DNA from: Haliotis cracherodii | Taxonomy: Eukaryota | Direction: 5' to 3' | NCBI RefSeq assembly: GCF_022045235.1 | Contig: NW_027266297.1 | Span: 10,292,001-10,356,000, forward strand | DNA: 64,000 nucleotides | Shown here: piece by piece, positions 5,641 to 63,861 of the stretch | Layout of the letters: each line of letters starts with the position of its first letter | Numbering within the stretch: the stretch's first letter is position 1 | Position numbers and translations under genes: made by a program | Notes under the pieces: model-generated | Told to the model about the DNA's origin: nothing | Seen by the model: the letters and a program-made list of their open reading frames with translations, nothing else | Database searches by the model: none

Positions 5641-7873
5641 TTATGGAGGTGTTGGTGTGACAGCATCCATGTTGTCGAATCCCAACTTGCAGCAGGCCAG
5701 AATAGGCTCCACACACACTTGACGTCCATCAGTGCCAGTGGTCAAGGATGTACACAGCTGGAAACAGCAGTAAGCTAATATCATTCATTTGTCTCAGAGA
5801 GTTTAAGGACACCGGTTCAAGTCTTTCGGACCTTATCCTATGTCCTTGTCCTTTTTAAAAAATAAGATAAGTACGACTGATTCACACATTGATCATTCTT
5901 CGTATTTCTCCACTTTTCCAATTTCCGTGATACGCGGTCAGTCAGTTTGATTTCGATGAACACAATACCAGCCATGTTGGTCTCATAAGACTATGAAACG
6001 ACATTATATATGATTTAAACAAACTACTTACAGCCATTCCACGTCCTCCGTATCTCTCGAGCTGTCTGAATGGTAGGTTGGCAGAGCCCAAGTCAACGAT
6101 AGTCTCCTGGTTGGTGGTGAGGGTGACAGAGGTGACAACTCCGGGGGTGGTGGTCGTTCCAGTGCCCCATGACTGACCCCATCCTTGTCCCCACTGCTGT
6201 CCCCATGGCTGACCCCACTGTTGACGAAGACCTTGACCCCACTGTTGGCCCCAAACGTTGCTACAGAAGAGACATAGTTTGATATTTAAGATGCATTTGA
6301 CAAGTGCTCTGTTTGAGTCATGATAAAAAGTATTTTACTGTGAAAAATGTAAAGATTCTTTAATCATATTCTGGGGAGACTCATGACGGGCAAACAATGA
6401 CATACAAATCACTTTCCTAGTATGGCTTTAACTTCCCAAACCCCTTCCAAGGGACCCAAAGGACAAATGACCCGCCCTTACCTTCCAAGGACAGGCCCGA
6501 GTCCATCAGCAGTACATCCTGCCTCCACGCGAGATCTCTCAGTGATAACAAGGTTGTAAGTTCCTGACGCGGTTGTGGTCCTCAGAACGGCTGATCCAGA
6601 CAAACCATTACGAGACTGACCAAACTATAATGAAAAATAATAAAACTCAGTTTAGTTCAAAACACACTACACGAGTGTAGTCACAATGGAGTAGCTGTTG
6701 CCATGCAAAATAAAGTACTTGGAATTAACCACAAATTACAAACCTTATCAAAACGTTTCCAGGCTGAAAACAGTGACCGATACACCGAATTTGAGGTCCA
6801 ACTGTGGTATCCATATCAAATATATCCCCGTCTAATAACCATTTCTTAATTTGTTACACCATCAATTAGCCTCCATCAAACATGGGTGTATAACTTCTTT
6901 TACCCGGCACTGTATTTACTTTAAGAATTATCTGACAACCCCAACCAATTCATTCAATAAATAAAACTACTTACACCCCATCCTCCCAAAGTTGGCTGCA
7001 TCCTCTTCAGGGTCAGTGACATCGCAAAACCTGTTGCTGTTCCAGTGCATGTGATGGTAGTATCTGGGGGGAATGTAAATACAGTTGAACACTTTGTATC
7101 AAGAAACATACACATACACATACAAGTAGTTAGTAAATGTGCGAGCTTCTTACGGATCGACCGTTTACTATTCTCAGATTTGGCTGAGGATTTTATTTTT
7201 GATCACCGTTTCAACACAAACATTTTTACTCTGAAAGGAGGCAAACATATGGGGTGTGATTTACCAAAAAACGTACATTTTCAAGACATCCAGCATGTAA
7301 GTTTACAAAGTATATAAAGGGATACAACATTTATTGGGGGCATAAACCCCGAGGATTACTTTTCAAGTATTTCTTTATTGTTTAACAACACTTGCGGTTG
7401 AGTGTTCGATTTCCATAGAGCGAATTCACCTTAACCTAGTTGTACAGTGGTTATATTATCTATAAATACTTACTCAGGTAAGGGTTGACAAAGTTCTGGC
7501 CCCATCCTGCTCCTACTTGACCCCAACCCGAGCTGCCAATCCCAAGTCTTTGGGTACCAAATCCAAGGCCGCCGGTACCAAATCCAATCGCAGCAGAGCC
7601 AAGTCCAGCTTGGCCTAAAGATGCTCCTGCCTGACCCAAACCAAGTCCTGCATTACCTTGACCAAGTCCGGCTTGACCCCAAGAAGCCCCTGCCTGTCCC
7701 AAACCAAGTCCTGCATTACCTTGACCAAGTCCGGCTTGACCCCAAGAAGCCCCTGCTTGTCCCAAACCAAGTCCTGCATTACCTTGACCAAGTCCGGCGT
7801 TACTCTGACCCCAACCTTGACCCAAAGTCAGGTGAGCTATGACAGATAGAAGAGCTACTGCGAGGAAAGCCAT
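5641..7873 (-). CDS. Gene A1: secreted Gly/Gln/Trp-rich protein with C-terminal metal-ligand-free Cu/Zn-SOD-like domain (325 aa, 5 exons)
   Basis: Exons 7873-7474, 7063-6975, 6624-6482, 6260-6032, 5757-5641. All introns GT-AG, phases 1-0-2-0, open frame to TAA. Signal peptide MAFLAVALLSVIAHLTLG; 3 x 21-aa repeat GLGQGNAGLGLGQAGASWGQA; C-domain NTTITC...GTYNLVITERSRVEAGCTADGLGPV...YGGRGMALCTSLTTGTDGRQVCVEPILACCKLGFDNMDAVTPTPP. The SOD-fold call is a by-eye alignment. Confidence 0.92.
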
Positions 7874-7928
7874 GGCAGATTTGTACTCGAGAAGAACCTG
7901 AGATAATGCTGGTATCTATCTGACCGGG

Positions 7929-8035
7929 TTTATATACACCACAGGTATAATAAGCTGGTAATTAATCACGTCACAGACATTTTAAGAGGGGATCAATCGG
8001 AAGTCCTATCCCATGTACCTTATGTAATTAAGGAC
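7929..8035 (-). promoter_or_regulatory. A1 core promoter: TATA box plus conserved upstream block
   Basis: TATATAAA on the minus strand at 7929-7936, about 56 bp upstream of the ATG. The block aatcggaagtcctatcccatgtacct-atgtaattaagg is conserved in all five A copies. Confidence 0.7.
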
Positions 8036-10240: not shown

Positions 10241-10281
10241 TGATTTATAACCGTGATATTGTTTCATTTGGCATCAGTTTA

Positions 10282-13364: not shown

Positions 13365-15534
13365 TCATGGAGGTGTTGGTGTGACAGCATCCATGTTGTC
13401 GAATCCCAACTTGCAGCAGGCCAGGATAGGCTCCACACACACTTGACGTCCATCAGTGCCAGTGGTCAAGGATGTACACAGCTGAAAAGAGCAGTAAGCT
13501 AATGTCATTTGTTTGTGTTTGGGAGTTAACGGCGTTTTCATAAGAACACATGTTTATCTCTTATGAGCCTGACCTGATGCATGTCCTTCGTTTTATAAAA
13601 TGACTGATTCTCGCATTGAGAATTCTGTGAATTTCTGTATCATTATAATTTTCAATTTACCCGGACGGTGGGTTTGAATTTTAATGTACATTATAACAAC
13701 CTATCTTCGGGTCTCGACAATAGACGACAATATATAGCATTAAAACAAACTATACTTACAGCCATTCCACGTCCTCCGTATCTCTCGAGCTGTCTGAATG
13801 GTAGGTTGGCAGAGCCCAAGTCAACGATAGTCTCCTGGTTGGTTGTGAGGGTGACAGAGGTGACAACTCCGGGGGTGGTGGTCGTTCCAGTGCCCCATGA
13901 CTGACCCCATCCTTGTCCCCACTGCTGTCCCCATGGTTGACCCCACTGTTGACGAAGACCTTGACCCCACTGTTGGCCCCACACGTTGCTGTAAAAGAGA
14001 CATAGTGTGGTATTTGAGATGCATTTGAAAATTATTGGTTTCCGATCATGAGGAAATGTATTTTAACTGTGAAAATTGTGAATTTTAAAAACATTGCGGG
14101 TGTTTAAAAACAATGTCACTATACTACTTCCCGAACCCTTTCCAAGGGACCAAAAGGACAAAGTACCCGTCATTACCTTCCAAGGACAGGTCCGAGTCCA
14201 TCAGCAGTACATCCAGCCTCCACACGAGATCTCTCAGTGATAACGAGGTTGTAAGTTCCTGACGCGGTTGTGGTCCTCAGAACGGCAGATCCAGTCAGAC
14301 CGCTTCGTGATCGACCAAACTGTATAGAAACACTTTGAACTCATTTCACTTGAAAACATACACTAATGAGATTATTATTAATGTAGTATTTGCCAGGCAA
14401 TTGAAAGTATCTGGTTTCGTCCAAAACATTACAAACGTTACCAGCCTGAAAACAGTTGCCTAAACACTGCCAACTTAAGGTCCAAATACAACTATGACAC
14501 CCGTATCAAATACATCACCATCGAATAATGTCTTGCTTGTATCATTTTAAGCCACCATCAGACATGGGTGTAAACTTTCTTTTGCCCGACAGTTTACTAA
14601 CCTTTCAAGACGTATCTGACAACCCAAACACTAGACCACATTCAGTCAATAGATAAAACCACTTACACCCCATCCTCCCCAAGCTGGCTGCATCCTCTTC
14701 AGGGTCAGAGATACAGCAAAACCTGTTGCTGTTCCAGTGCAGGTAATGGTTGTATCTAGGAACAAATACAAGCTTCGTAGGGATCAATGGTTTACTATGG
14801 CGGTGCCTCGGAATTATGGTATCGGTCACTGCTTCAATACAAAGAGTTAAATTCTTGCAAAGAGGGAACGTCTTCTTTTTCAACTAGACACACATATTTC
14901 CAAGACATCCAGCATATCCAGTGTACAATGTATGTCAGGGAATAAACCAAGAGGCTTACAGTTCCAGTATTTCCTGTATTATTGTACAAATCTTGCCCTT
15001 GGTCATTCGACAATCATAGAGAGAATAAACCTTATCCTGGTTGTACAGTGGCTATAACTAAAATTAAAGTATCTATGAATACTTACTCTGGTAAGGGTTG
15101 ATAATGTTTTGGCCCCATCCAGCTCCAACTTGGCCCAAACCCGAGCTGCCAATCCCAAGTCCATTGGTACCAAATCCAAGTCCACCAGCGCCAATTCCAA
15201 GTCCGGCTTGACCCCAAGAAGCCCCTGCCTGTCCCAAACCAAGTCCTGCATTACCTTGACCAAGTCCGGCTTGACCCCAAGAAGCCCCTGCCTGTCCCAA
15301 ACCAAGCCCTGCATTACCTTGACCAAGTCCGGCTTGACCCCAAGAAGCCCCTGCCTGTCCCAAACCAAGTCCTGCATTACCTTGACCAAGTCCGGCTTGA
15401 CCCCAAGAAGCCCCTGCCTGTCCCAAACCAAGTCCTGCATTACCTTGACCAAGTCCGGCGTTACTCTGACCCCAACCTTGACCTAAAGCCAGGTGAGCTA
15501 TAATAGATAGAAGAGCTACTGCGAGGAACGCCAT
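13365..15534 (-). CDS. Gene A2: tandem paralog of A1 (341 aa, 5 exons)
   Basis: Exons 15534-15087, 14755-14667, 14319-14177, 13988-13760, 13481-13365 (TGA). Exons 2-5 have the same lengths as A1 (89/143/229/117 nt); 4 x 21-aa repeat. Confidence 0.92.
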
Positions 15535-15589
15535 GGTAGATCTGTACTCGAGAAGAATCTGAGATAATTCTGTTATCTATCTGACCCGG

Positions 15590-15597: not shown

Positions 15598-16859
15598 CAC
15601 TACAGGTATAATAAGCTGGTAATTAATTATGTCACAGATATAAAAGAAGACACCAATCGGAAGTCCTATCCCATGTACCTTATGTAATTAAGGAATGGCT
15701 TTAAGTGATCTACTATTTACCCAGGTAAACTAAGAGCGATATATTCATTAATATCCGGTCCTTTCACTCCAGACATTTCACTGATAGCGTTTATTTACGT
15801 TATGCAATAGTGTGATTCACACAACCATTCCTGTGTAATCCGCCTTTGATATTTATTTAGTGTTAAACGGTTTATTCAGACTTTGTCGTTAACTACATAT
15901 ACTGTTCATTGCATTCTTATAATTTTATGAATATTATGAATAAAGTTTATAAAATATATGCATACTTTCTATAAAATATAACTTTCTCAGCTTTTAATTT
16001 TCATGCTCAAATAGTATGCAAATAATGGTCACAATAAACTGACGTACAAAAGGCAGCATACTATTGAAAATAGGATTTGACCAAAATATGACAAACGTTA
16101 TTAAAACGATACCAGGCCGTAAACACTGCAAACTTAAGGTTCAAAACACAGCTATGATACCCGTATCAAATACATTACCATGGAATTGTTTCTTTCATTT
16201 TCAGCCACCATCAAACATGGGTGTTTCCTTTCTTTCGCCCTACAGTTTATTTTTCTTTATGAACAAATTGTTATTTACAGAAGTGAGTCCCTGGGAGCTT
16301 TTCACTGATTCAAGATTAATATTTTTATCTGAAGGGGAGAGTCGAGCAATGCTTTCTTTTCAAATTACGTTATTATTTTCAGGACATCCTGCATGTCCAG
16401 CGAAGCTGAAGCAAAACAACCTTTCTCCGCAAATTGTAATAACCACTGCGGTAGATTGTAATAAAATATTATTCGTTTGCAAATATACAAAGAAATTTGC
16501 ACGAAGTTTAAAATGTGCGACTAAGCTGTTTGAAAATCGAAATCTGGACTTTGAAACGACTGAATTGATAAAGGCAACTGTACATCAAATTCTTGATATT
16601 TGTATTTACAAAAAATAGATTTCGACTTCCAGTGTTCGTTCGACCTTAACAAGATCAATTCCAACCTCCAGCATGTTTAAGGAAAAAAATGCTATTTTGT
16701 TTCAATTTCTATCATTCCTATTGAAAGACAGGTGCGACAAATTGTAATACAAAGTGCGGTAAATTGTAATAACATCTCCACAACCTTCCGATTTCAAACT
16801 GAATTCGAGTTCCAGTGCTTGTTCGACCTTAACATGATCAATTCACCCTCCAGCATGTT

Positions 16860-17105
16860 TAAGGGGAAAAAAAGAAGCGATTTTGTTTCACGATAACTGA
16901 TCTTCTGGGTCGGATTCCAGCCTCGCAAAGATGGTTACTGACAGTCTGGTCCGATATCCTCCTCAAACCAGGGATGCGTCCTACAGTGTCCGTAGCTGTG
17001 GCATTGCGATGACGTAGGTGGAACAGCCGAAGGTAGCTATACTGTGCAGGGGTGGTAGCTGTTGTTCGGCCGGTTCTCGGCCGGTCTTCAGTGGAATTGA
17101 ACTGT
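16860..17105 (-). mobile_element. Tc1-like transposase fragment (DNA-binding region)
   Basis: DRPRTGRTTATTPAQYSYLRLFHLRHRNATA..RISDQTVSNHLCEAGIRPRR. Confidence 0.75.
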
Positions 17106-17179
17106 GTGTTTTTAAGAGTGTATTCGGAGTCATCCAGAGTCATCCAGATTAATTTGGTCAAGAGCGTATGAAACATTAA

Positions 17180-20561: not shown

Positions 20562-22690
20562 TTATGGGGGTGTTGGTGTGACAGCATCCATGTTGTCGAA
20601 TCCCAACTTGCAGCAGGCCAGGATAGGCTCAACACACACTTGACGTCCATCGGTGCCAGTGGTCAAGGATGTACACAGCTGAAAACAGCAGTAAGCTTAT
20701 GTCATTTGTTTGTGTTTGGGAGTTAACGACGTTTTCATAAGAACGCCTGTTTATCTCTTGGCCTGATGTGATGTCCTTCCTTGCCTGACCCGATGTCCTT
20801 CGTTTTATAAAATGACTGATTCTCGCATTGAGGATTCTGTGAATTTCTGTATCATTATAATTTTCAATTTACCCGGACGGTGGGTTTGAATTTTAATGTA
20901 CATTATAACAACCTATCTTCGGGTCTCGACAATAGACGACAATATATAGCATTAAAACAAACTATACTTACAGCCATTCCACGTCCTCCGTATCTCTCGA
21001 GCTGTCTGAATGGTAGGTTGGCAGAGCCCAAGTCAACGATAGTCTCCTGGTTGGTTGTGAGGGTGACAGAGGTGACAACTCCGGGGGTGGTGGTAGTTCC
21101 AGTGCCCCATGACTGACCCCATCCTTGTCCCAAAGGCTGTCCCCATGGCTGACCCCACTGTTGACGAAGACCTTGACCCCACTGTTGGCCCCACACGTTG
21201 CTGTAAAAGAGACATAGTGTGGTATTTGAGATGCATTTGAAAATTGCTCGTTTCTGGTCATGAAGAAATGTATTTTAACTGTGAAAATTTTAAAATACTT
21301 GACATTTATAAAACATGCTGGATGTTTAAAAACAATGTCACTATACTACTTCCTTAACCCCTTCCAAGAGACCTAAAGGACAAAGGACCCGTCATTACCT
21401 TCCAAGGACAGGCCCGAGTCCATCAGCGGTACATCCAGCCTCCACACGGGATCTCTCAGTGATAACTAGGTTGTAAGTTCCTGACGCGGTTGTAGTCCTC
21501 AGAACGGCAGATCCAGTCAGACCGCTTCGTGATCGACCAAACTACAATGAAATTTTTGAAACTCATTTCGCTTGAAAACACACACCTCACGAGAGTAGTA
21601 CTAACGTCTTAACTGCCAAGCAAAAGAAAGTATGTGGTTTTCGACCAAAACATTACAAACGTTATTGAAACGTTACCAGACTGAAAGCAGTTGCCGAAAC
21701 ACTGCCAACTTAAGGTCCAAAACACAACTATGATACCTGTATCAAATACATCACCACCCAATAATGTTTTGTTTGTATGGGTGTATACTTTCTTTTATCA
21801 TAACTACTTACACCCCATCCTCCCCAAGTTGGCTGCATCCTCTTCAGGGTCAGAGATACAGCAAAACCCGTTGCTGTTCCAGTGCATGTAATGGTTGTAT
21901 CTAGGAACAAATACAGTTGGACACTTCATGTCACGCAATATACTCATACAAGAATTAGTTTCAGTAGTAAGTAAATGTACAAGCTTCTTAGAGATCGACC
22001 GTTTACTATTCTTTTGCGGTGCCTCGGAATTATGGTTAAGGCCACTGCTTCAACACAAACAATTAGATTGTCTGAAAGGAGGCAAACATCTTCCTTTTCA
22101 CAAAAGACACACATATTTTCAAGACATTAAGCATATCCAGTGTACAATGTATGTCAGGGAATAAACCAAGAGGCTTACATTTCCAGTATTTCCTGTATTA
22201 TTGTACAAATCTTGTCCTTTGTCATTCGACAACCATAGAGCGAATAAAACTTATCTTGTTTGTACAGTGGCTAAAACTAAAATTAAAGTATCTATGAATA
22301 CTTACTCTGGTAAGGGTTGATAATGTTTTGGCCCCATCCTGCTCCAACTTGGCCCCAACCCGAGCTGCCAATCCCAAGTCCATTGGTACCAAATCCAAGT
22401 CCACCAGCGCCAATTCCAAGTCCGGCTTGACCCCAAGAAGCCCCTGCCTGTCCCAAACCAAGTCCTGCATTACCTTGACCAAGTCCGGCTTGACCCCAAG
22501 AAGCCCCTGCCTGTCCCAAACCAAGTCCTGCATTACCTTGACCAAGTCCGGCTTGACCCCAAGAAGCTCCTGCCTGTCCCAAACCAAGCCCTGCATTACC
22601 TTGACTAAGTCCGGCGTTACTCTGACCCCAACCTTGACCCAAAGTCAGGTGAGCTATGACAGATAGAAGAGCTACTGCGAGGAAAGCCAT
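20562..22690 (-). CDS. Gene A3: tandem paralog of A1 (320 aa, 5 exons)
   Basis: Exons 22690-22306, 21900-21812, 21541-21399, 21200-20972, 20678-20562 (TAA). GT-AG, intact frame; 3 x 21-aa repeat. Confidence 0.92.
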
Positions 22691-39698: not shown

Positions 39699-42600
39699 AT
39701 GTCTCTCTCTATTGTAACAGTGGTAGCTTTAATGGCCAAGATGGCCTTTGGTCAGTTGGGTAGCATGGGAGGTGGTATTGGCGGTTCAATGGGTGGCTTT
39801 GGAGGCGCTGCAACTGGTGCCATGGGCGGGGGTGCAATGGGTGGCATGGGCAGGGGTGCAATGGGTGGTTTAGGGGGAGGTGCAATGGGTGGTTTAGGGG
39901 CAGGTGCAATGGGTGGTTTAGGGGGAGGTGCAATGGGTGGTTTAGGGGGAGGTGCAATGGGTGGTTTGGGGGGAGGTGCAATGGGTGGTTTAGGGGGAGG
40001 TGCAATGGGTGGTTTTGGGGGAGGTGCAATAGGTGGCATGGGCGGAGGTGCAATGGGTGGTTTAGGGGGAGGTGCAATGGGTGGTTTCGGGGGAGGTGCA
40101 ATGGGTGGTTTAGGGGGAGGTGCAATGGGTGGTGGTGCAATGCTTGGTGGTGCAATGGCTGGCTTCGGAGAAGGTGCAATGGGCGGCTTGGGAGGAGGTG
40201 CAATGCGTGCTGGTGCAATGGGTGGCTTTGGAGGAAGTGTGATAGGGGGCATGGGAGGAGGTTCTCCATTTGGCATGGGTTCTGGTATGGTTGGTATGCA
40301 ATCTGGATCTTCAAGTGCAGGTGTTGGATTGGCTTCAGGAGTCGGTTCAAGTTCGCGGAACGGCGGACAAGGATCTAGCCAAAGCGGATTTGGATCTAGC
40401 CAAAGCGGATGGGGATCCAGCCAAAGCGGATGGGGATCTAGCCAAAGTGGATGGGGATCTAGCCAGGCCAGTTCGCCTTCCTCTGGATGGAGCCCTGTGT
40501 CTGGTTCAAGTGCTGCAGGAATCGGTAGTCCAGCTGGGTTTGGTGCAGGTAGATTTGGGTTCCCTGGCGCAGGTTTCGGAGCCGGTCTGCCAATAACTGG
40601 GCTTACAGGAGGAGCTGCTGGTTTAGGATGGGGATTCAACCCACAGCAAAGAATCCTGAGTGAGTAGTTCCGTGAAGTTCAACACACATCTACATATTTC
40701 AAAGTAGACCCAACAGTGATATAATCGGAACAATACAAACCCATAGAACCATAGAAATTGGAATTTGTGACATGACATAAACAATGTTTATAACCATAAA
40801 GTTATAGTCAAATATTTTATCAAATTCGCTGATCTTCTTCATTTTGATGATTTCGAAGAAAAACGACCCGTTTTCATATGTATCTATCTGAACACATCGA
40901 TAAGTCCCAAAACGATCATGCTCAATCGACACTCTTCTCTGACCAATCATATTTGAGATAATACCCACTTTCATGTTACAATAGTGATTTATATGAAACA
41001 TGTCTGTCAATCATTTTCTCATTATATACATGTAATGAGGATTTGAAGTCTATTGGTTATAGCGTTCGGTCACCCCATCTATTCTCACAAGGTACATTGT
41101 GTTAAGCTCATTGTTAGTTCTCCCATCCGTGATTTGACTGTAATGAAATGTATGTATATCAATTGGAATGAGATGAATCAAGGAGTTTGAGTACAAACCA
41201 TAACATATATTCCGTAATTAAAAATAAACTGTTACCATGGCATCAGTATTTGAGGAATTGTTTTTGTTTCAGACACTACAATTACCTGTGCCTTCACCGC
41301 TACCGGCTTTACCGGATCAGTCACCCTGAGAAGAGCAGCATGGGGGGTAAGTTTTAAATATTAGATGCGGAGTAGTTGTGTGGGTTTAACGCCGCTTTTG
41401 AAGTCGTTGACTTGATGTTGATGTTGACAAATTAAGTCAGGCCTCAGATTTCACGAAAGAATTAAACGTCATAATCAAGGCGAATATGGGATTCGAGCCC
41501 ATGTTCTGCACAGCGAATTGCTGCGTCTTAGACGACAGGGCCACCATTTGTAATTCTATATTCACATTATTAAAAAGTTATTAAGAAATATATCTCCCTC
41601 CAGTTTTCAAACCTTTCTCTCACCGGTTAGCAAACTATCGTCGACATTTTGATAGCATAATTTTTTGTGTGAATATATACAACTTTTTCATTACCGCCAA
41701 ATTCTGATGTCAGGAACTCCGTATGTAACGAACTCAATATACAACAGGACCTGGGAACTGTACATACAGTCAAGTCTCGTTAATCCGACAATCGGCTTTA
41801 TCTGACACTTATGATGGGAACCGATTAAATCAGTGCTATTTAGACCCGTTAATCCGACAGTCTCGCACTCCGACTCCGACACACCTAATTTGCAACGAAT
41901 GACCGAAATCACTCATTAATCAGTCTCGTTAATCCGACACAGTGATCAGCGAGCTCCGTGGTCATCTGCCCGCGAGTACACAGCCCCGTGTTTTGAACCG
42001 AGACGAGTCAGCTGGTAGCTACATAGTACTTATACATAGAGATAAACTTGCTTGACAGTAAACAATTAATGCTTTAAATAAACAAAACAGGATTAATCAC
42101 ATGCTGTATATGTCTGGTGGAGAATTGAACTTGTCTTCGTTTTCGACTTTTCAATGTATCCGCAATACGTTATAGCTTTTTAAGAAGTTTCCAGAGATGC
42201 CCTGGAATGCCGGCAAAACAAATGTTCTGAATGGTCTTGATCTTCCGCTCCAGTGGGTTAGAAGGAGTCCGTCAGGATCCATGACTATCAGCTCCACAAC
42301 AGGAACAGGAACATTCAGCGTTGTCCTGACAGAGAGGTCCCGTACAGAGGCTGGTTGTACGTCTGACGGTCTTGGTCCAGTCATTGCTAGGTAAGAGTTG
42401 CAGTTTGTTATAGTCATTCGTGAAACCCCATTAACTCGAATCGAAACATCATGTGACTCAAAGTGTGCCAATATGACTCTTGCTCAATGGGATCATTGAT
42501 CCACAAATTATGTCTGGTGCAATTTCCAATTTATGCATGTGCCATATGTTCACGTGTTTTTTCAAGTGAATAATTGACTTGCCTTCACGTGTGTTTGTGA

Positions 42601-44203
42601 CGTGGGGCACGATACACTCACCTTTTCGCACACATCTAGCATCATCACTATTTAATACACATATTCTTATATTATCGTAATTTGGCGCATGATAGACAAA
42701 CATGATGACTGATGCAGTTCTCTATTTTGATTTGTATCAAAAGTTTACGTGTTTTCTTTTAAGTGAACACTTGACTTGCATTTGCATGTGTTTGTGACGG
42801 GTGGCACCGACGAGACAGGATACGCTCACCTTAATTTATCTCATAATTATTCAGAAATACGTGCTTATGATTCAGTCGGAATCGTATAGTTTTTTTATGA
42901 TTAAGGGAATGGATTTGTCCCTGTTATTTTTACATTGATGTATTTATTGATCCAGGCGAGACTACCCTATATCATCTAGTATTGTTAGTAATTAGCTTCG
43001 TATGAAATACGATGTTGGATGAGACAGCAGTGGAACATCGTAGTCCTTGAATCGTCGACATTACATTATCCTTGTTACTTTATTCCGCCTTTAACGATTG
43101 AGCTGATGCGAACAATCTAATTATTTAACTTCATTACTTGCAAATTGGTATCTCAGTCTTTTGCGAAACATTGCACAACAATAAAACCTTACCCTGAAAT
43201 AATTAATACTATAATATGTTCCAGTAACCTAAGATGGGGTATGTGGAGTATGGGTTCCAGCAACCGTGGCGTCCTTGCTACCGTCACCCTCTCGGCCAAC
43301 CAGCAGAACAACGTCAACCTTGCCAACCTTCCATTCAACGAACTTGACCTCTACGCTGGACGTGGTCTTGCGGTAGGTTTTACCTCCGATTTTAAGTTTA
43401 TGTTTTTAAAGTTAAAGTAAACATTTACCTGAAAGTGTTTACCAGTTTCATTCAGTTTCATTTCCATGGTGACCTTCATAGATACATATTAAAGGTGAAT
43501 ATGTTATTGGTTAATATTCTTAACTGTATTATAAGTCCACTTATGATGCGTTATTCCACTCCCCAAGTGAATGCTCATTGCGCTACGTTATTATTACTGA
43601 AGTCATTGAATCAATGTGTGGTCAAATTTCATTCTCATCTCCCTGGGGAGTATACAACTTTAAATTTAACTTTAAGTTTCGTAGTTACATGAAGTACGTA
43701 TTAACTTTCTCATTTACCATTGTTTGTCGATTCCTAAAGGCAGTTAGGTAGCCAAGTGGCTAAATCTTTGGCCCGTCGCGCCCAAGACACGGGTATGATT
43801 CGTCACAATGATGTAATGTGTAATAGATGACTGGATTATGACCGAAAACATATTTACTCACTAGTTCAGTTAAGCGAGTTGAAATTTACGCCACATCGGC
43901 AGTACGTTATCCAAATAGTGGCGTGTCACTTGTGGCGTGTCGTGTCAATCTTAAAAAATATGACTGTCAATTTGACAAACAAATATTTCAAAGACATGCA
44001 CTGGTGAAATGTATGAAACGCTTTCTTTGCGTCCACCGCCATTATGTTACTTGAATAATGAGAAGTCGTTTACATCTAATTTCTTTGCATTTCAGTTGTG
44101 TTCAACTTTGACAACTGGTGTTGATGGCAGACAAGTCTGTTCCGATCCCATCCCCGCCTGTTGCAAGCTGGGATTCGACGACATGGATGCAATTACTCCT
44201 TAA
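39699..44203 (+). CDS. Gene B: secreted Gly/Met-rich repeat protein with the same SOD-like C-domain (about 475 aa, 5 exons)
   Basis: Exons 39699-40659, 41273-41346, 42254-42390, 43225-43372, 44096-44203; phases 1-0-2-0. Signal MSLSIVTVVALMAKMAFG, about 12 x GGAMGGLG, 4 x SSQSG(F/W)G-type repeat, then NTTITCAF..GTFSVVLTERSRTEAGCTSDGLGPV..YAGRGLALCSTLTTGVDGRQVCSDPIPACCKLGFDDMDAITP. The exon 3 acceptor could alternatively be the in-frame AG at 42175. Confidence 0.9.
41762..41942 (+). mobile_element. TA-flanked MITE / DNA transposon end in gene B intron 2
   Basis: tacagtcaagtctcgttaatccgac plus internal gttaatccgaca repeats; related to the 51168 terminal inverted repeat (TIR). Confidence 0.5.
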
Positions 44204-47688: not shown

Positions 47689-48686
47689 ATGATGATGATG
47701 ATTCGCACTGCATTGTTCTGCTTAGCAGTATTTGTGTCCGGTGCACAGTGTCAAGTCTGGAGTGGACAGCAGCCACAGGGACAATGGAGCAGTCAAATTG
47801 GAAGCCAAGGAGGATTTGGTGGAAGCAACGGAGGACCAAGCATGTTTGGAGGCGGTAGCTTTGGTCCAAGTCTGTTCGGTGGAGGCAGTCTTGGAACAAG
47901 TCCCTTTGGTAGTTCAGGTCCATTTGGGAGTAATAACTTCAGATCTAACCCAGGGACTAACTGGATCAACTCGGGACCTTTTGGAATGAATGGTCGTAAT
48001 GCACCAGACGGTCAGCCTTTTGGACCCAGTTCCTTTGGTCCTAACGGACCAATGCCAAGCAACCCCAATGCATGGGGCTCATCTCCAAACCAAAGAGGTC
48101 CATTTTCACCAACGTCTCCCTTCCTGTCAAACTCACCGAATTCCCAGATGAATTCCTTTCAGTCAACATCAAATTTTCGACAAAATCCGTTTCAAAGGAA
48201 TCTGAACTCTCGATCTAATAATCCATTTGCACCACCATCAGGTAGTATGGTTCCGTTTCCCAACATGCCTTTCATGCCAAATTCTGCCCAGAATAGATTC
48301 GATACAGGGTTTTTTCAAGGTTTTGGATGGCAACCAGGAATGGCGTCTCTCGCTATACCAGGAACACCCAGCATAGGAAGCAGTAGGTCTGCTTCCAATA
48401 GTAATGGTATTGACATTTCAGAAGGTAGGTTTTATTAGAATTGAATATACCCCATAAACTTGTACTTACACATTTATGACCGTTTAGAAACATTTGGCTA
48501 CTTTGTTCACTGGTGAATATGGGGTGGTGTGGTTGTCAAAGTGTTCGTACGTCAAAACGAAGGCCTGAGCGAATTCCTTACATGGGTACAATGTTTGAAG
48601 CTTATTTATGGAGTCCCGAGTGTGTAATGGTTGCAATATTGCCAAAAGCTGCTCAAACCATACTCACTTTTTGTTCGTTTAACGTC

Positions 48687-48734
<48 letters not shown>

Positions 48735-51700
48735 TACATGCATTATTCATGTAAACTAAACTTCAATTTGAATTCAAATAGCAAACGCATTATTTATGGT
48801 ATTGTTGTCATGATGATATTCTTTCATTGAAGGCGAGACTCTCACCTGCAGTGCCAGAGACAATACAGGCTCTTTAGCAGTTACTCTATCATGGACGGAT
48901 AATAGCAGCCAGGTAAACTGTTATTAACTCATTTCTCACCTTCATACAAAATTTTGTTGTAGTGATAAAATAGGTGGTTGCCGCGTTCACTCGTATCGTC
49001 GAAGGCGCGTATACAAGGTGTGAACAATCAAAACGACGAAACCCTCCTCCACAATCATCAGAAATCTCTACTATATGATTACGATGATATAAGAACGTTC
49101 GCGAAAAGATGAGCGTATAGTGTCCCACAGGTGACGTACGTCATAAACACATGCAAAGGCTAAGTCAACTGTTCACTTGAAAAAACACAAGAACATATGG
49201 TACACGCCAACAATTGGGAATTGCAGCGGGCATTTTGGTCAATGATATGCATCAAACATGGAAATGTCCTCCTCTTGTCTATTATGAAACGTCTTGAAAA
49301 CTTCACTAAGGCCTTGCATATTCTTACCCTGATCAAATAACTTTTGAGCAGGAATCGCACGACGCTCTTTGATGTCTTCGTAGAAAGAGCATGTGCTAGA
49401 CTGTACCTCAAAGATTGTGAAATGTAAACACCAAAGGCTGGAGCTCCTGCAGTCTTGCTCAACATAAAGGGAAAGTTGACTATTGGAAAGTTGAAGTCAT
49501 CCCTCTTGTCATACAGACTTGTGGATAGTTTTTGTCACTCTGAAACCCATTTCCATGATCCCTGTCATGATATTGCTGAAAAATTGAAGAAAGCTGAGTG
49601 AAACCATACTCGCAGAATACAAAACAAAATGATGTACTATCACCGTACATGCACATGTTTATTTATCTATGCCAAAATTTAAACTAAACTGCCATGCTTG
49701 ACAAATAGAGATGAATTTGTTTCTATGACTTTTGGTCCTTAGAGAGGACAGACGTTTAACCCAATACAAGGTGTCGTCAACGTGACGTCAACGACGCTGT
49801 CTGGAACGTTTACGGTGCTCCTGACACGGCGAGCCCGGGTGGAAGCAGGGTGCTCTTTAACTACCATGGGCGAGATTCTCTCACGGTCAGTTTAGTCAGT
49901 GAATGTCAACATATTGAATACAGGTAAAAAGAATATGAGAGAAATATTGCCACTGTGCCAACATTTAGATAACCACTTGTTACTTTGGTAGTGTGTCAAA
50001 ACAGATTTAATATAAAAATTATAAAACAAACCTCACAGACACCATGTCCTCAGCACGTTCTGTCACATATATAGTGGAGCGGTGGGGGTAGCGGTCCGGG
50101 TTAGATTCTCCGTTTGGTTCAACGTGTGGAGCTCATTTCTTGTCTCCGCCGTGATATTGCGGGACCATTGCTAAAAGCGGCGTAAAATCATAGTATTACT
50201 CATTCACATGTATAGTGTAAACTCTCTATCAGAATCTAACCCAAATAATCAGTTTGGTTTTGTAAAATGATGTTATTTATCAGCACTGGTCATTTAGAAA
50301 CTGTTGTGTCAGTGAATACAGGACAATATGTGAAATCCTTGACTTCATGTAACTTCTCTATGCAATTTGGGCAAGGATAAGGCATCCCTATTGGCACTAA
50401 TTATGCACCCCACATATGTTGATCTGTTTCTGTATGCATATGCATCGGATTTTCTGCTCGGATCGGCAAAAACAAAGCGTGATAATATGGTCAAGAAGTT
50501 TAAGTTAAGCTTCATGTATATCAATGATCTGATACCGTTCAAAAATGGTCAAATAGCCAATTTACTCACCTGAATTAGAAACAAAAGCGACCAGTGAAAG
50601 CACCTCATCTGTTTCATATTTAGACCTATGCTTAAAGATTCTTAAAGAGCAATATTCCAGCAGCTCGAGGCTTTGGTGTCCACAGTTCACAATTTTGTCG
50701 GTGCAAACGAGCTTGCACTTTATGCGAAGATTTGAAAGAGCGCCATACGACTCTTCTGTTCTTAAACGCCTTTCAAGATTAACTTTTTTCTGTGACTGTG
50801 CGTTTCTAGCATGCAATGTGCACAAAGAAGCGACAGAAGTTTAATATTATTTATTAGGGAGAAAGAATAGGACAGTCAATACATAAGTCTCCAAATGTAT
50901 TCATATTCTTAACATGCTCGTCTTCAAGCTTCATGAAATGGATCATGGATCATGACGCCCGCTGAGTGACTTCCTTGTTCTCTCTACAGAACTACTACAA
51001 ACAGCGCATGGGGAGGCACCAGGGTCTTCAGCCTGGGAGTGTTGTCTTCAATACGTGTGAGACGTGGTGTGGAATCTTCAATTACTATACCGACACCTAA
51101 CCTGCCGTTGTTGAGTCTGCAGCAATATTCAGGGAGAGGAATCGTGGTAAGTGTATTTCCACATCGTTACTGTGAAACCTCGTTAATCTGGACCTCGGGC
51201 GGTTATTTTGAGCATCTTCAACTACAAACGACAATCGTTCGTTAATCCGGACGAATTACTGGGATCAATGTATCCGGAGTAACGAGGTTTCATTGTATAT
51301 GAAATTAACTTTTTTTTATCCCAATGGTCCAAGGTACACTAATGTGTCCTTTCGTAGAACACATGTATCACGTGTTAGCTCACCTTGCAATTACTAACGT
51401 TATGTAGACGTCTTATAAATACCATTGTTGACGTTATTTGAAATTACGTCTTTAACTGACGGTGTTATTGTGTATCATTGTTGACATCGTGTGACACATT
51501 TCTCTATGTAGTAGATAATACATTTTTACTACAGGTAATAATACAGTAGGGATAATTAAGAAGTTATATCGACCGCGTAGTGAAAATGTATATGTTCCTT
51601 GAAACCACTATGACACGCGCCCATGTAATGATATTTGTCTGATATGCGCGAGGGCTGTTCAGACAGCTGATAACAATCCCACTCAGAAATGATGATCAAG

Positions 51701-52144
51701 GAATTATAGTCTGAAATATGTGCCTAATGTTCATCATTTAATTGTTGAATTAAATTATTTGTATCTTTTTGCCGCAATGGGGTAATCCGGAACGCGTTCA
51801 ATGAATATACCCTTAAATCGTGTAGGATCTTCTAAGGCAAAGTGCTTGTTCCAAATGTACCTCTGAAGGATACTCTGTTGGATTAGACGGTTATCTTAAT
51901 GCAAGGCAGTTTGGGTTGTGTACTCCCCATGGAGCTGAGAATGTAATGTAGTGCGTGTGGAGACCTGTACAATATAAGTACACACAGCATTATTATCATC
52001 ACTAGTTGACCTTCATGGGAATTGTCTGTGTTTCAGCTATGTAGCGGCACAGCCTCAGATTCTACCGGAAGCGCCAGTTGCATTGGCACCTTTCACCTCT
52101 GCTGCAAACTCGGTTATGACAATCAAGACGCCATCCTACCATGA
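47689..52144 (+). CDS. Gene C: secreted Gly/Phe/Pro/Asn/Ser-rich protein with the same SOD-like C-domain (about 407 aa, 5 exons)
   Basis: Exons 47689-48424, 48833-48912, 49743-49885, 50990-51146, 52037-52144; phases 1-0-2-0. Signal MMMMIRTALFCLAVFVSGAQC; C-domain ETLTCSA..GTFTVLLTRRARVEAGCSLTTMGEI..YSGRGIVLCSGTASDSTGSASCIGTFHLCCKLGYDNQDAILP. Which of the four tandem ATGs initiates is uncertain. Confidence 0.88.
48512..48670 (+). mobile_element. Degenerate R2 SINE in gene C intron 1
   Basis: catgggtacaatgtttgaagc..caatattgccaaaagc..aaaccatactcac. Confidence 0.6.
48688..48733. repeat. (AAT)n microsatellite, about 15 units
   Basis: Direct observation. Confidence 0.95.
49160..49530 (-). mobile_element. 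Penelope-like RT C-terminal fragment in gene C intron 2
   Basis: STSLYDKRDDFNFPIVNFPFMLS..APAFGVYISQSLRYS. Confidence 0.75.
50075..50205 (+). mobile_element. Degenerate R2 SINE
   Basis: cgccgtgatattgc..ttgctaaaagcggcgtaaaatcata. Confidence 0.55.
50290..50640 (+). mobile_element. Penelope-like RT fragment in gene C intron 3
   Basis: GIPIGTNYAP..VDLFLYAYASDFL..SFMYINDLI..PELETKATSES. Confidence 0.72.
51168..51297. mobile_element. MITE with TA-flanked terminal inverted repeats (Tc1/pogo type)
   Basis: tactgtgaaacctcgttaatctgga ... tccggagtaacgaggtttcattgta. Confidence 0.75.
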
Positions 52145-60362: not shown

Positions 60363-62398
60363 ATGATCATGGCGTCCAAAAGTACCCTGGTTCTCGTCCT
60401 TGTTGGTGTGATGGGTAGGTTGATCTCTGCCCAGTGGGGTAACAACGGTTGGGGCAACTTTGGACAACAGCCTGGGTGGCCTCAACCCGGTGGTCAACCT
60501 GGCATTGGAGGTGGACTTGGAGTTGGAGGTGGACTTGGAGTTGGAGGTGGACTTGGAGTTGGAGGTGGAGTTGGAGGTGGAATGGGAAGTGGTCAAGGAT
60601 TCTGGGGAAACAACCAGAATACCCGTGAGTACATTTTCTTGACCATGCTATTGATCATTTACAGAAACAGAATTAGAAAGGTTATCGTTATGCTCTTAAT
60701 TGAGCATTTAATATCATAATGTTTTCAATTTACGTCATATTCAGTATTCCAAATTTGCCAATTAGACCACGGAGAGAATATGCAAACGTTAACGAAGCAA
60801 ATCTATCAAAATGACATCTAAAATGTGTGTAGTAGACATAGAAAGCAAACATAATCACCCCTTTGTCATAATTAAGCGTGTGATTGGTAGGAATGAAATT
60901 ATTGGAAACTATTACATTACTTTTCATATTTTCCAAGAGATTTTGTAAATTAAACATGGCTATGTTGCTATTTCAGTATTTACAATGTTTCTACTTTTTT
61001 ATGTTTTTCGTTGTGTATAGATAAGAATTATTCGAAAATGATATAGATTTGCCTCAAACAAACACAAAAAATGTATTTTTAAGCAACCATGTTTGTGTTG
61101 AATTAAATAAATCATAATAATTGCAAAGTATATTCTCGTAAATATACTTCGGATCTATGTTCAATATGCTGATATGGAATATTTCTTTCCAGAACGCTAT
61201 TTCACGTGTATAGGAAAAAATACAAATGGCGATGAGATGAGAGTGACCTTCACTCAAGCAGTATGTATATATTTATTGTTATTACAGAATTGGTGATTTT
61301 TTTTAGTATAGCCAAGACTGTTTGTTTGCTTGTGTTTACTGTTTACCAAACTCAGCAATATGATTGTGGCCTGTTAATTATCGAGCCTATACCAGAAAAA
61401 AACAGTGAGATTATGAAAAAAGCGAAAAAAACATCTTTCCCTGAGTAATGTTTTATGCCCTCTGGGTACGATGACGTGCAATCAGCTAAGTGACAGAGAC
61501 TGACCATCCGATTCACTGCTACCAGTATATTTAAACCCGGAATCCCCAGGGGGGTGGGAGGGGGGTGGGGGTGGTGGAATTGGGTATATTTTGTAAGAGG
61601 AAACCTGAGGTAAGATAAAGGATATACAGGAGAGGTAGAACTTTTCTGTCGCAATATATCTGTTAAGACGTCTTCACGGTTGTATATCATACACGTGTGT
61701 AGGATATTTCAAGTTGCCGACACAAAGGTTGAAATCACTATACGCATGGGGTTCTTGTTGAAAATACAGAGGTTTCTAATCATTAGGCAATGACATTTAC
61801 ATGTCATGTTAGGAAGATAGTTTGTGTGGAATAGACATACAGTAAAACCTCATTAATCAGAACAGTACATTTTATAGAGTAATTGTTCGGAGGATTGACA
61901 AATTTCCGGATAAACGAATCACTCTGCTGAAAATATATATAGTCGTTCCCAACAACATCGTCCAGAAGGTGGGGTTTCCATATTAACGGTGTCCGCACTG
62001 AAGCGGTTTCACTGTATTCAAATGTGAGTCCTTTTCTTAGAAAATGATTACACCGTGGTCTAGTAGATAGAACGCCTGCCCGAAAAGCGGAATGTAGGTG
62101 GTTCCGTCCCCTGGTCGAGTCACACTAAAAGATGTGAAAAGATGGTTGTTTCCCTCCTTGGCGTTCGGCATAAAGGTGCGACATGTTGTTGTTGGGCGTT
62201 GTTATTCATCCCCCCCCCCCCCCCCCCCCCTCCAAAGCCAGGATATGGTTGGATCAGCTCTGTGGCCGATCTTACAGCACAGTGATACTGACATACGATC
62301 CACCGTAGGCATAGAGTTACTTGTGATAGAAAAAACGCCCAAGTCACTTTAGCAGAACTCTGGCGCAGTGATCGTGAGTATGTCCCCTCCCTCCCCCC

Positions 62399-62429
<31 letters not shown>

Positions 62430-63861
62430 GCCCATACACCCGTGAACGAGATCTTTATCCTCATTTCGCCTCACCTCGACTACAGATTTATCATTTTGAA
62501 CTAACCACACTGGGAAATTACGGCATACAGTTTTCCCTACAGTTCGTTACATTTAACATATGGATAAAGGTGATTTAATGCATAAATATATCATTGCAGG
62601 ATCAGCAAGAGAGATGGCAAATCAACCGTTGGTTCAACCCCCAACGCATTCAGATGGATGCTGTGGTCCGCGTGTCTGGTCAGTCTCAGACCGCTGGACA
62701 GTTCCAGTTGGTGGTCACCCGCTACGGTCGTGTGGAGGATGGTTGTTCAAGCCAAGCTCTGGGCAGAATCGTGGATAACTTCCAAGGAGTGAACTTCTTC
62801 CAGCCAAGAGAGTCTAATTCCCAGTAAGTCCTTATAGATTTCCCCATTCCCATCATTTGTTTGCTAAGAAATAATTCACAAAAACACAGATCACCCAGTT
62901 CATCGGCATGAAGTAGGTGAAGGTGAGGTGAAATTTGGTTTAACTTCGCGTCCGGACTGATGCCGATTTATAGTGCTAGCTCACTGAGATACCATGCCGC
63001 AGTTTAACATGAATACCCCACTCAGACACAGGATACTGACTCCGAGCAAACCAGTCCTTGTTTAAGCCCTTAATGACGGGCGATAGGCAGGTTAAGGACA
63101 AGTACAAACTTTTAACGTCTTTTTGTATGACGCGGCTGGAGATCGAACGCTCTCGGGGCAGACGCTCTACCATTAGACCACGGATGCTTTTGCTCGTATT
63201 GGCCAAGGGGCCAAGTCTTCTAGGATGCCGGAAATCGCTGTGCAGAGTTACGTCCCGTAGGCGTACCAGAAGCCTGTGAATTCGAATCCCCGTCTGAGAC
63301 TTGCATCACTTTTCGCTATCCTCCCACATTAAAATGAAACACCGTGCTATAACTGAAATACTGTTCAAAGCGGCGTTAAACCCAAGTCAATTTACTGTCA
63401 AGCAGGCACGCCGTGGGGATTCTGGAGCAGATTACTATATACGCGTAAGCCTGCTCTTGAGGACATTGATGGTTACAATGTCAAACAGATTCTAAATAAC
63501 AGTGGACATTATATGAATAGATGCCTGAAAATCAGTGATGACACCAGGTGTTCGTTAAAAGGGTAAGCTTCTGATGTTGTAAAAGTACGGTTGAATCATC
63601 CCGTAAAAATAAACCTTAAATATTACATCCTATAACCGAAATCACATATTTGTTAATTCTATACATATCATGCTCAATTATCAGTGTTGAGTAGATGGTG
63701 GATTTGTGATATTTGATGATTTCATGCATTTTACCAAATCATCTTACAGAACTGGAGTGCTTGGATCGCCTTTCGTGCTCAGACCCAACCAAGGTCATAC
63801 ATCAAGCGGAATAGTGCGTGGCTTTGAGGCACTGGAAGAACTGAATGGACGTGGTCTTGCT
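60363..63861 (+). CDS. Gene D (3'-incomplete): secreted Gly/Val/Leu-rich protein with the same SOD-like C-domain; exon 5 lies beyond the window
   Basis: Exons 60363-60624, 61193-61260 (QRYFTCIGKNTNGDEMRVTFTQA), 62600-62823 (..GQFQLVVTRYGRVEDGCSSQALGRI..), 63750-63861 (TGVLGS..LEELNGRGLA). GT-AG, phases 1-0-2-0. Signal (MI)MASKSTLVLVLVGVMGRLISA, then GGGLGV repeats. Confidence 0.87.
61838..62016. mobile_element. MITE with TA-flanked TIRs in gene D intron 2
   Basis: tacagtaaaacctc ... gcggtttcactgta. Confidence 0.6.
62052..62350 (+). mobile_element. tRNA-derived SINE (family R4)
   Basis: ccgtggtctagtagatagaacgcctgcc..ggtcgagtcacactaaaagatg; related to the minus-strand copy at 62940-63185. Confidence 0.55.
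62940..63185 (-). mobile_element. tRNA-derived SINE (family R4-like)
   Basis: Minus strand ccgtggtctaatggtagagcgtctgcc..gttcgatctccagccgcgtcatacaaaaagacgtt. Confidence 0.6.
63205..63390 (+). mobile_element. Degenerate R3 SINE
   Basis: tcgctgtgcagagttacgtccc..ttcgaatccc..aaatactgttcaaagcggcgttaaac. Confidence 0.6.

Follow-up and report, generated by a model that had tools for sequence, protein, structure and literature searches.

Black abalone genes for putatively secreted proteins that join a glycine-rich arm to a predicted superoxide dismutase domain lacking metal-binding residues at the mapped positions

What kind of protein is encoded by a run of neighbouring, similar genes in the black abalone Haliotis cracherodii, each with a glycine-rich region followed by a conserved cysteine-containing domain? 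We examined a stretch of 64,000 nt (the window; assembly GCF_022045235.1, contig NW_027266297.1, positions 10,292,001 to 10,356,000). A preliminary description of its sequence had proposed eight genes for secreted low-complexity proteins whose C-terminal domain resembles a superoxide dismutase (SOD) without its active site, and had suggested that they form a gland-secreted structural material using the SOD barrel as an assembly module. The observation was borne out by our analysis, whereas the interpretation was supported only in part: its structural core holds, but the material role remains an inference.

Gene structure and expression at the locus

Eight intact paralogous genes were present at the positions described, five in tandem on the minus strand and three on the plus strand. 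Each possessed a hydrophobic, signal-like N-terminus (judged by eye), a low-complexity region and a conserved C-domain split over exons 2–5. Intron phases were 1-0-2-0 in all eight. The genes were as follows (window coordinates).

5641..7873, minus strand: gene A, 322 aa; exons 7873-7474, 7063-6975, 6615-6482, 6260-6032 and 5757-5641; splice sites chosen by phase and by homology to gene F, intact reading frame; the arm is a G/A/L/Q repeat, and a WGQ repeat sits at the start of exon 4.
13365..15534, minus strand: gene B, 341 aa; exons 15534-15087, 14755-14667, 14319-14177, 13988-13760 and 13481-13365; C-domain 97% identical to that of A.
20562..22690, minus strand: gene C, 320 aa; exons 22690-22306, 21900-21812, 21541-21399, 21200-20972 and 20678-20562.
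27542..29675, minus strand: gene D, about 303 aa; exons 29675-29333 (GTAAGT donor homologous to those of A–C; an alternative donor lies at 29282), 29026-28938, 28802-28669, 28373-28145 and 27658-27542.
35223..37217, minus strand: gene E, about 303 aa; exons 37217-36875 (alternative donor at 36824), 36568-36480, 36342-36209, 36064-35836 and 35339-35223; 95.9% DNA identity to D.
39699..44203, plus strand: gene F, 475 aa; exons 39699-40659, 41273-41346, 42254-42390, 43225-43372 and 44096-44203; the 300-aa arm has GGGAMGG and SSQSGWG repeats.
47689..52144, plus strand: gene G, 406-407 aa; exons 47689-48424, 48833-48912, 49743-49885, 50990-51146 and 52037-52144; the arm is rich in S/G/P/N/F.
60369..63861, plus strand: gene H, of a second subfamily; exons 60369-60624, 61193-61260, 62600-62823 and 63750-63861, located by tblastn with the H. 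asinina orthologue (protein P0023) and by splice sites.

The preliminary description had noted that one gene (labelled D there) lacks its exon-5 part in the window. This gene is the last one, H, whose exon 5 lies on the same contig at +256 to +582 from the window end and carries a G/M/Q-rich C-terminal tail. The C-domain motifs that had been listed, TxTC, G-x-[YF]-x4-T-x-[RY]-x-R-[VT]-E-[AD]-G-C, GV[LV], GRG[MLI][AV]LC and CCKLG[FY]D, were present, with two small exceptions in gene H, which has YFTC instead of TxTC and, in its exon 5, CGKIG instead of CCKLG. The TATA promoters that had been claimed were found in part: TATATAA boxes lie at -63 (A–E) and -56 (F) from the ATG, and G and H have none.

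The splicing of gene F was supported by transcript data. All four of its junctions (40659>41273, 41345>42253, 42388>43223 and 43371>44095, all GT..AG) were carried by contigs of three RNA-like runs at a depth of 300-1500 and were absent from a DNA-like run with a flat depth of about 5. Exon depth reached 300-2600 in runs of about 100 Mb. RefSeq protein models used the same exons for gene G (P0001, 100% identity) and gene F (P0005, matching from an internal Met). As to selection, the five tandem copies were 85-96% identical in DNA (4-15% diverged), but their C-domains were 94-97% identical in protein, and all were intact.

The family extends beyond the window, with at least 13 genes in this cluster, at least 25 loci in this genome and 47 clusters worldwide. 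All named members are gastropods, including adult shell-less forms. Genome annotation currently hides them under misleading names such as rtoA-like, PE-PGRS-like, collagen-like, fibroin-like and elastin-like. A word-indexed homologue search with the C-domain of gene G returned only G orthologues. An alignment that mixed full-length proteins with exon fragments of the other genes was dropped, as MAFFT scattered the fragments. In database searches, genes A–E and H were represented exon by exon and genes F and G by P0005 and P0001; exons were joined only to check reading frames and composition.

Predicted fold, descent and catalytic positions

We next assessed whether the C-domain is related to Cu/Zn SODs, a point set beforehand as a test of the proposal. 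AlphaFold2 models of F and G gave a confident all-beta C-domain (pLDDT above 90), whereas pLDDT was below 50 throughout the arms. VIA-align comparison with 48,161 PDB cluster representatives placed 14 chains of the Cu/Zn-SOD superfamily first for both F (Z 13.4 to 9.5; human SOD1, 136 of 153 residues aligned, rmsd 3.6) and G (Z 13.3 to 10.2). The next unrelated fold scored Z 6.7 and 6.3, respectively. Foldseek listed only Cu/Zn SODs and their homologues among its top matches (E down to 6e-6, TM 0.6-0.74 by target length, about 160 columns), and an ESM Atlas feature search gave 30 of 30 hits in Sod_Cu sets. Although these are predicted models and not experimental structures, the C-domain is thus placed at the fold level with the eight-stranded Greek-key beta-barrel of SOD1/SOD3, superposable over most of the domain.

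In contrast, no sequence method linked the family to SOD. Pfam Sod_Cu (PF00080) gave no hit up to E = 10, and hence none at the gathering score, for the exons, for the family proteins P0001, P0003 and P0004, and for ten other members. A genome-wide scan with PF00080 found 29 SOD exons elsewhere, among them the true SODs, and none in this cluster. The family profile found no PDB chain up to E = 10. Exon-wise hhalign against an abalone SOD yielded collinear anchors without significance, which we used only to map residues.

The gene structure pointed to common descent with the abalone's own extracellular-type SOD genes (loci L012 and L019, on the contig we number C2). Their intron phases, inferred from sequence and not from RNA, are also 1-0-2-0: a phase-1 acceptor before FATC, a phase-0 donor after strand 2, phase 2 in the Arg79 codon and phase 0 at GRAIV|VH. 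The last intron splits GRxxV|VH exactly where the family splits GRGxA|LC, and these genes end in the ACC motif that the family shares. The SOD1-like gene on another contig (C23) has an extra intron that the family lacks.

On the mapping described above, whose anchors are weak but collinear, none of 45 aligned family members had a ligand-type residue at the columns of His46, His48, Asp83 or His120. The columns hold V/A/L (His46), T/N (His48), V/I (Asp83, 40 of 45) and C (His120, 42 of 45), and the column of the catalytic Arg143 holds I/Y/V. The His63 region holds G or D/P/N. The Zn-loop ligands His63, His71 and His80 could not be placed exactly, because that loop is replaced by variable low-complexity inserts such as the WGQ repeat in A–E. 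The C-domain of gene F contains no His at all. The family GC and the first C of CC were aligned with the SOD GC and AC(C), i.e., with the positions of the Cys57–Cys146 disulfide of SOD1, and these columns hold Cys in 39 and 44 of 45 sequences; pairing of these cysteines is inferred.

A homodimer model of gene F through the SOD1-type interface passed its controls, with an ipSAE of 0.76 against a best control of 0.01. This mark was reached by 21 of 30 proteins solved as pairs and by 0 of 23 solved as single chains. The runs shared at least 78% of their contacts, and pLDDT was at least 78. The score may reflect the model's memory of solved SOD1 dimers, and the dimer remains a prediction. The interface was the best conserved surface, its residues being more conserved than the rest of the domain (0.56 against 0.38, p = 1.5e-4), although they include structural Gly and Cys.

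The arms are almost uncharged. Glycine makes up 30-44% of the arms of A–F, which contain 0-6 charged residues. Together with the signal peptide read from sequence, the long, glycine-rich, repetitive and predicted disordered arm matches the architecture of silk-like structural proteins.

Interpretation of the family

The explanation we favour, with moderate confidence, is that each protein has a signal peptide, then a disordered arm that is silk-, elastin- or FG-like and differs between paralogues, and ends in a domain of about 150-190 residues that most likely descends from an extracellular-type Cu/Zn SOD gene. In this view, the domain keeps the barrel, the cysteines corresponding to the SOD disulfide, and the extra Cys of the ACC motif together with the strand-1 Cys. 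It has gained a further conserved Cys pair, one member of which sits at the His120 position, and it cannot be a dismutase. The disulfide-locked barrel would dimerise through the conserved SOD1-type interface and so pair two sticky low-complexity arms, which could then associate into an extracellular gel, film or fibre. The domain would act as a terminal assembly module, as the terminal domains of spidroins do. We regard as established by the analysis the gene structures, the splicing and high transcript abundance of gene F, the predicted fold, the absence of ligand-type residues at the mapped positions and the family range, whereas secretion, disulfide pairing, dimerisation, the tissue, and the material role with presence in an extracellular material are inferred.

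Where such a material would be deposited can be proposed only tentatively. The proteins may be mantle products built into the periostracum, the organic framework of the shell or the larval shell, with the SOD-derived domain as one more shell-matrix domain attached to repeats. Relatives in other gastropods carry typical shell-matrix-like inserts (G/Y, M/G, His-rich, poly-Asp), extracellular SODs and one SOD-domain protein with GDDR repeats are listed in the Lottia shell proteome, SOD is reported among shell matrix proteins of several conchiferans (bioRxiv 10.1101/2021.07.10.451900), and silk-like glycine-rich proteins of H. asinina are expressed in the mantle (PMC4944945). Several unnamed clusters hold sequences of ocean metatranscriptome collections, which would fit larvae or pteropods. 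However, ten family motifs were absent from 6.2 million characters of H. laevigata shell-proteome supplements, and the three Lottia family IDs (228102, 152430 and 155722) were absent from the Lottia shell-proteome supplements, although string searches of text cannot exclude presence and cleaned shells lose the periostracum. Moreover, the shell-less adult sacoglossans Elysia and Plakobranchus keep family members, and the abalone arms lack the Tyr, Lys and acidic residues typical of tanned or mineral-binding matrices. We consider the shell reading possible but doubtful. A non-shell secretion, such as pedal or epithelial mucus, an adhesive, or the jaw or radula matrix, in which the dimerising domain would cross-link gel-forming arms, is slightly less favoured still. 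The occurrence in shell-less adults, the uncharged elastomer-like arms, the lack of family motifs and IDs in the string searches of these two in-depth shell proteomes, and the Pro/Lys/Tyr peptide repeats of Lymnaea and Littorina relatives, which resemble adhesive or sclerotised proteins, speak for it, but no direct evidence of any kind does.

Two other readings appear unlikely. Non-enzymatic secreted SOD homologues (cavortin, dominin, pernin) are major bivalve haemolymph proteins, and the very high transcript abundance could suit soluble plasma or immune proteins with an antimicrobial or binding arm. Yet the bivalve proteins keep part of the metal site and are not known to have long repeat arms, and many paralogues with different material-like repeats fit structural diversification better. 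A cationic glycine-rich antimicrobial role was rejected because the arms are uncharged. It is very unlikely that the proteins are still metal-binding or redox-active enzymes with an unusual site. The SOD fold and the UniRef name of one Lottia member (an SOD copper/zinc-binding-domain protein) favour this, but the residues at the mapped columns and the lack of His in the C-domain of gene F oppose it. Identity of gene F with the H. asinina glycine-rich boundary protein was also rejected, as that protein has GMGA and QQQV/QQQA repeats and gene F has no Gln runs.

We found no paper describing this family. Family motifs were absent from the papers searched, from the H. laevigata, Lottia and Lymnaea supplements and from the silk-like protein datasets, and searches by RefSeq-style names found nothing. 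A broader reading is conceivable, though we hold it as less likely than not: early in gastropod evolution an extracellular SOD gene was converted into a non-catalytic, disulfide-locked dimerising end-module and then repeatedly fused to silk-, elastin-, FG- and adhesive-like arms, resulting in a previously unrecognised class of biomaterial proteins, with at least 25 genes in abalone, whose assembly is governed by the old SOD dimer interface. If the favoured reading holds, it is a clear case of an enzyme fold stripped of its chemistry and reused as an assembly module for extracellular materials, with the evolutionary trail (intron phases, disulfide cysteines, dimer interface) still readable. It also gives gastropod biomaterial research a defined, highly expressed multigene family. 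The design of an uncharged elastomeric arm plus a small stable dimerising barrel could be addressed directly with recombinant protein and may be useful to materials researchers.

Comparison with known systems

The closest known proteins are extracellular-type (SOD3-like) Cu/Zn SODs, including the abalone's own. The predicted barrel matches human EC-SOD (2jlp_A, Z 12.3 and 12.8), and both groups have a signal peptide, Cys at the SOD disulfide positions, the ACC motif and a Cys in strand 1. The family differs in the loss of ligand-type residues at the five mapped catalytic positions, the replaced Zn loop, the expansion of exon 1 into a disordered arm of 100-300 aa, and the loss of recognition by Pfam Sod_Cu.

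Reuse of the SOD barrel without classical catalysis is already known from CCS domain II, the B. subtilis SOD-like protein, silkworm EA4 and bivalve cavortin, dominin and pernin. CCS domain II and the B. subtilis protein were among the top structural matches (Z 9.5-13.3), and EA4 was the top Foldseek hit. None of these is known to be fused to long silk- or elastin-like arms or to form large tandem families.

The Lottia gigantea shell proteome contains secreted SOD-domain proteins (Lotgi1|101611, 166129 and 234845), one of which (234845) combines the domain with GDDR-type low-complexity repeats (supplement of PMC3374290), a precedent for fusion of an SOD domain with repeats. Their SOD domain is still recognised by standard domain tools, and their IDs differ from those of the Lottia members of this family.

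Silk-like structural proteins of metazoan materials (PMC4944945, whose datasets do not include the family IDs) and spidroins share with the family a signal peptide, a glycine-rich disordered repeat region and a small folded end domain, which in spidroins dimerises and controls assembly, and they too occur as multigene families with rapidly changing repeats. In the abalone proteins, for which incorporation into a material is inferred, the folded module is a predicted SOD-derived beta-barrel and not a helical bundle.

Gene structures and expression

The window (positions 10292001-10356000 of contig C34 of the Haliotis cracherodii assembly, G000) lies on a 73.4-Mb contig and contains no N. Six-frame reading and motif scans identified eight genes. 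Five of these were tandem copies on the minus strand (A-E, spacing about 7-7.7 kb), and three were on the plus strand (F, G, and H). Splice sites were placed by phase, by GT/AG, and by homology, after which every gene had five coding exons with intron phases 1-0-2-0 and an intact reading frame. Genes A-E and H were examined exon by exon, with exons joined only for checks of reading frame and composition. Exon 5 of gene H lies just outside the window, at +256 to +582 (locus L022:256-582), and adds a Gly/Met/Gln-rich C-terminal tail. TATATAA boxes were located at -63 (A-E) and -56 (F) from the start codon.

All four junctions of gene F were observed directly. Contigs from three sequencing runs (X1, X2, and X4) skipped 40660-41272, 41346-42252, 42389-43222, and 43372-44094 with GT..AG ends at a depth of 300-1500, while intron depth in those runs was 0-7. 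A DNA-like run (X7) covered exons and introns evenly at about 5 and showed none of these joints. The RNA nature of X1, X2, and X4 was inferred from the spliced contigs and from the contrast between exon and intron depth, and transcript evidence was obtained for gene F only. As the runs hold only about 100 million letters, such depth means a very abundant transcript. RefSeq proteins confirmed the models: P0001 (“protein rtoA-like”, 406 aa) is gene G at 100% identity, and P0005 (“uncharacterized protein”, 349 aa) is gene F from an internal Met.

The following additional features were observed within the window:
16859-17182 (-): an open frame between tandem units B and C with a helix-turn-helix-like stretch that recalls Tc1/mariner transposases, probably a transposon remnant in the spacer
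41472-42095, 42564-42875, 43500-43655: stretches inside introns of gene F that reach depths of thousands to 44,000 in X7 and are also high in the RNA-like runs; these are high-copy interspersed repeats
43252: a 6-base, in-frame insertion (GGCTTC) in exon 4 of gene F relative to the assembly, carried by all four runs examined; it is either a polymorphism or a difference between the sampled animals and the assembly
44423-44932: a tandem repeat of about 30 bases downstream of gene F that reads as long repetitive open frames on both strands and is not a gene
62120-62464 (-): an open frame on the opposite strand inside intron 2 of gene H that contains ATELIQPYPGFGGGG, closely resembling the start of the C-terminal tail of the neighboring gene I (P0035); it may be a relic of an inverted exon 5

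Extent of the family

We assessed the extent of the family by running a profile of F and G orthologues on the whole assembly and by tblastn with family proteins. Four more genes were found just upstream on the same contig, among them P0052 with an elastin-like GVGPG arm, and one more gene was found downstream (P0035). Complete intron-less paralogues were found elsewhere: a cluster of at least nine on contig C9, two on contig C10, and one on contig C67. In total, there were at least 25 loci in two subfamilies, one A-G-like and ending right after the domain, and the other H-like and possessing a second low-complexity tail.

The intron-less members are encoded in single open reading frames of 304-502 aa, at least nine of them forming the tandem cluster on C9. 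This looks like retroposition of an H-like (and one A-like) gene followed by tandem amplification. The regions concerned (loci L001-L008) were:
C10: 3211400-3216000
C67: 47887000-47891500
C9: 25556700-25612500
C9: 17028700-17033200
C10: 25963800-25968200

One of them, an A-like copy at L001:1532-2662 (+), has an elastin-like GVGTPGFGVGG arm and lacks the Cys that corresponds to SOD Cys57 (EGTK instead of E-x-GC), so one disulfide would be lost. It may be decaying or a variant.

Against 1.84 billion representative proteins, the same profile detected only 47 clusters at E <= 0.001. Two or three of the weakest were repeat proteins that look unrelated, and these were left out of the family alignments. 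Every named member is a gastropod: Haliotis spp., Gigantopelta, Lottia, Patella, Littorina, Lymnaea, Physella, Elysia, and Plakobranchus. The other members came from transcript-sized contigs, including those of ocean metatranscriptome collections. Source names describe only the repeats (PE-PGRS-like, collagen-like, fibroin heavy chain-like, elastin-like, and glycine-rich cell wall protein-like), with the one exception of Lottia V4CSQ0, which UniRef calls an SOD copper/zinc-binding-domain protein.

Predicted fold, origin, and residues of the C-domain

AlphaFold2 models of F and G were made using family alignments of 45 and 49 sequences. In both, the arm was disordered (pLDDT below 50) and the C-domain was a confident all-beta structure (107-111 residues at pLDDT 90 or more). 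Foldseek against the PDB returned 104 matches at E <= 0.001, and every match listed was a Cu/Zn SOD or a known SOD homologue, covering about 160 columns at TM 0.6-0.74 by target length and 14-19% identity. An independent all-against-all structural search of 48,161 chains ranked 14 SOD-superfamily chains first for F (SOD1, SOD3, CCS domain II, viral, fungal, and bacterial SODs, and the B. subtilis SOD-like protein) at Z 13.4 to 9.5, while the next, unrelated sandwich scored Z 6.7. Gene G gave the same picture (Z 13.3 to 10.2, then 6.3). A protein-language-model search with the C-domain alone landed only in Sod_Cu clusters (30 of 30, score 0.91).

Sequence methods, by contrast, failed to make the link. 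Pfam Sod_Cu did not hit any exon or full-length member searched. In a scan of the whole genome, it found the true SOD genes on contigs C2, C56, C23, C80, and C45 but nothing in this cluster. The match on C80 (locus L009:1357-3306, minus strand) is a 649-aa single open frame with three Sod_Cu matches, two of them above the Pfam cut-off, and partly retained His motifs; it is a multi-domain SOD-like protein unrelated to the family described here. The family profile found no PDB chain up to E = 10. Exon-wise hhalign against an abalone SOD was not significant, although its three best local alignments were collinear and fell on the expected anchors: the GC-T-S stretch, the GR motif, and ACC.

Gene structure supplied independent evidence on homology versus convergence. 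The extracellular-type SOD genes of the abalone on C2 appear to have a phase-1 intron just before the strand-1 Cys, a phase-0 intron after strand 2, a phase-2 intron in the Arg79 codon, and a phase-0 intron splitting GRAIV|VH, although these SOD splice sites were inferred from sequence and not from RNA. This is the family's own 1-0-2-0 pattern, and the last intron falls at the identical residue (GRGLA|LC). The intracellular-type gene on C23 has an additional intron near Cys57 that the family lacks. The C2 genes also end in ACC, like the family's CC; the same motif ends human EC-SOD. We conclude that the domain descends from an extracellular-type SOD gene whose signal-peptide exon grew a repeat arm.

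Residues were mapped through the hhalign anchors onto the 45-sequence alignment. The C-domain of gene F contains no histidine at all.

Residues in the family columns at SOD1 positions
His46: V/A/L
His48: T (38 sequences) or N
Asp83: V/I
His120: C (42 of 45)
Arg143: I/Y/V

Six cysteines are conserved. Two are at the positions of the SOD disulfide. Two more are the strand-1 Cys and the second C of CC, a pair that is linked in human EC-SOD and whose pairing in the family is presumed by analogy. The last two, the Cys at the His120 position and one in the former electrostatic loop, are a family-specific pair. Exon 5 of gene H reads CGKIG where all relatives have CC; the second Cys is Gly, as in SOD1, which would leave the strand-1 Cys without its presumed partner. 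The zinc-loop region is replaced by variable low-complexity inserts, which in A-E take the form of a WGQ repeat at the start of exon 4. The codon split by intron 1 (e.g., 7474/7063 and 40659/41273) is Asn and is followed by T-T, giving a conserved N-T-T glycosylation sequon right at the start of the SOD-like domain in A-F; gene G has no such sequon.

Putative assembly and role

The arms are long (about 110-300 aa), disordered, and rich in Gly. The arms of A-F have 0-6 charged residues and that of G has 12, and all have scattered Trp/Phe. The arms differ completely between paralogues: a G/A/L/Q repeat of spider-silk-like composition in A-E, GGGAMGG and SSQSGWG repeats in F, an FG/NPF-rich arm in G, and an elastin-like GVGPG arm in P0052. 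The five tandem copies have drifted 4-15% in DNA but stay intact, with C-domains 94-97% identical, suggesting purifying selection on dosage or function.

A two-copy model of the F domain scored ipSAE 0.76 against a best control of 0.01. The mark was reached by 21 of 30 proteins solved as pairs and by 0 of 23 solved as single chains; the runs shared at least 78% of their contacts, and pLDDT was at least 78. The contacts were residues 195-203, 246-252, 309-312, and 337-344, i.e., the TxTC strand, the stretch after the former His48, the GRG motif, and the CCKLG[FY]D end, which correspond to the SOD1 dimer interface. Such a pass may come from the model's memory of solved SOD1 dimers. Independently, these positions are the best conserved surface of the family (mean conservation 0.56 against 0.38 for the rest of the domain, one-sided Mann-Whitney p = 1.5e-4), although part of that conservation is due to structural Gly and Cys. 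In our view, the most economical mechanism is a disulfide-locked, non-catalytic barrel that would dimerise and pair two self-associating arms, which is the logic of a terminal assembly domain. The splicing of gene F was observed, whereas the fold and the dimer are predictions, and disulfide pairing, loss of catalysis, and a role in a material are inferred. We are highly confident of the molecular identity, consider dimerisation somewhat more likely than not, and regard the material role as about as likely as not.

A shell role and a role in another matrix or adhesive secretion were both considered. Family motifs were absent from the supplements of the H. laevigata shell proteome, and the three Lottia family IDs were absent from the Lottia shell proteome. 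As these were text searches, and cleaned shells lose the periostracum, the result is only weak evidence against a shell role. No description of the family was found in the literature searched, which was incomplete. Relatives in other snails carry G/Y, M/G, His-rich, poly-Asp, or Pro/Lys/Tyr repeats, which look like matrix or adhesive proteins, and shell-less adult sacoglossans also keep the family. The same Lottia tables list other SOD-domain proteins, one of them with GDDR repeats, and SOD is reported as a recurring shell-matrix component. A repeat-plus-SOD-domain design in a gastropod secretion is thus not without precedent.
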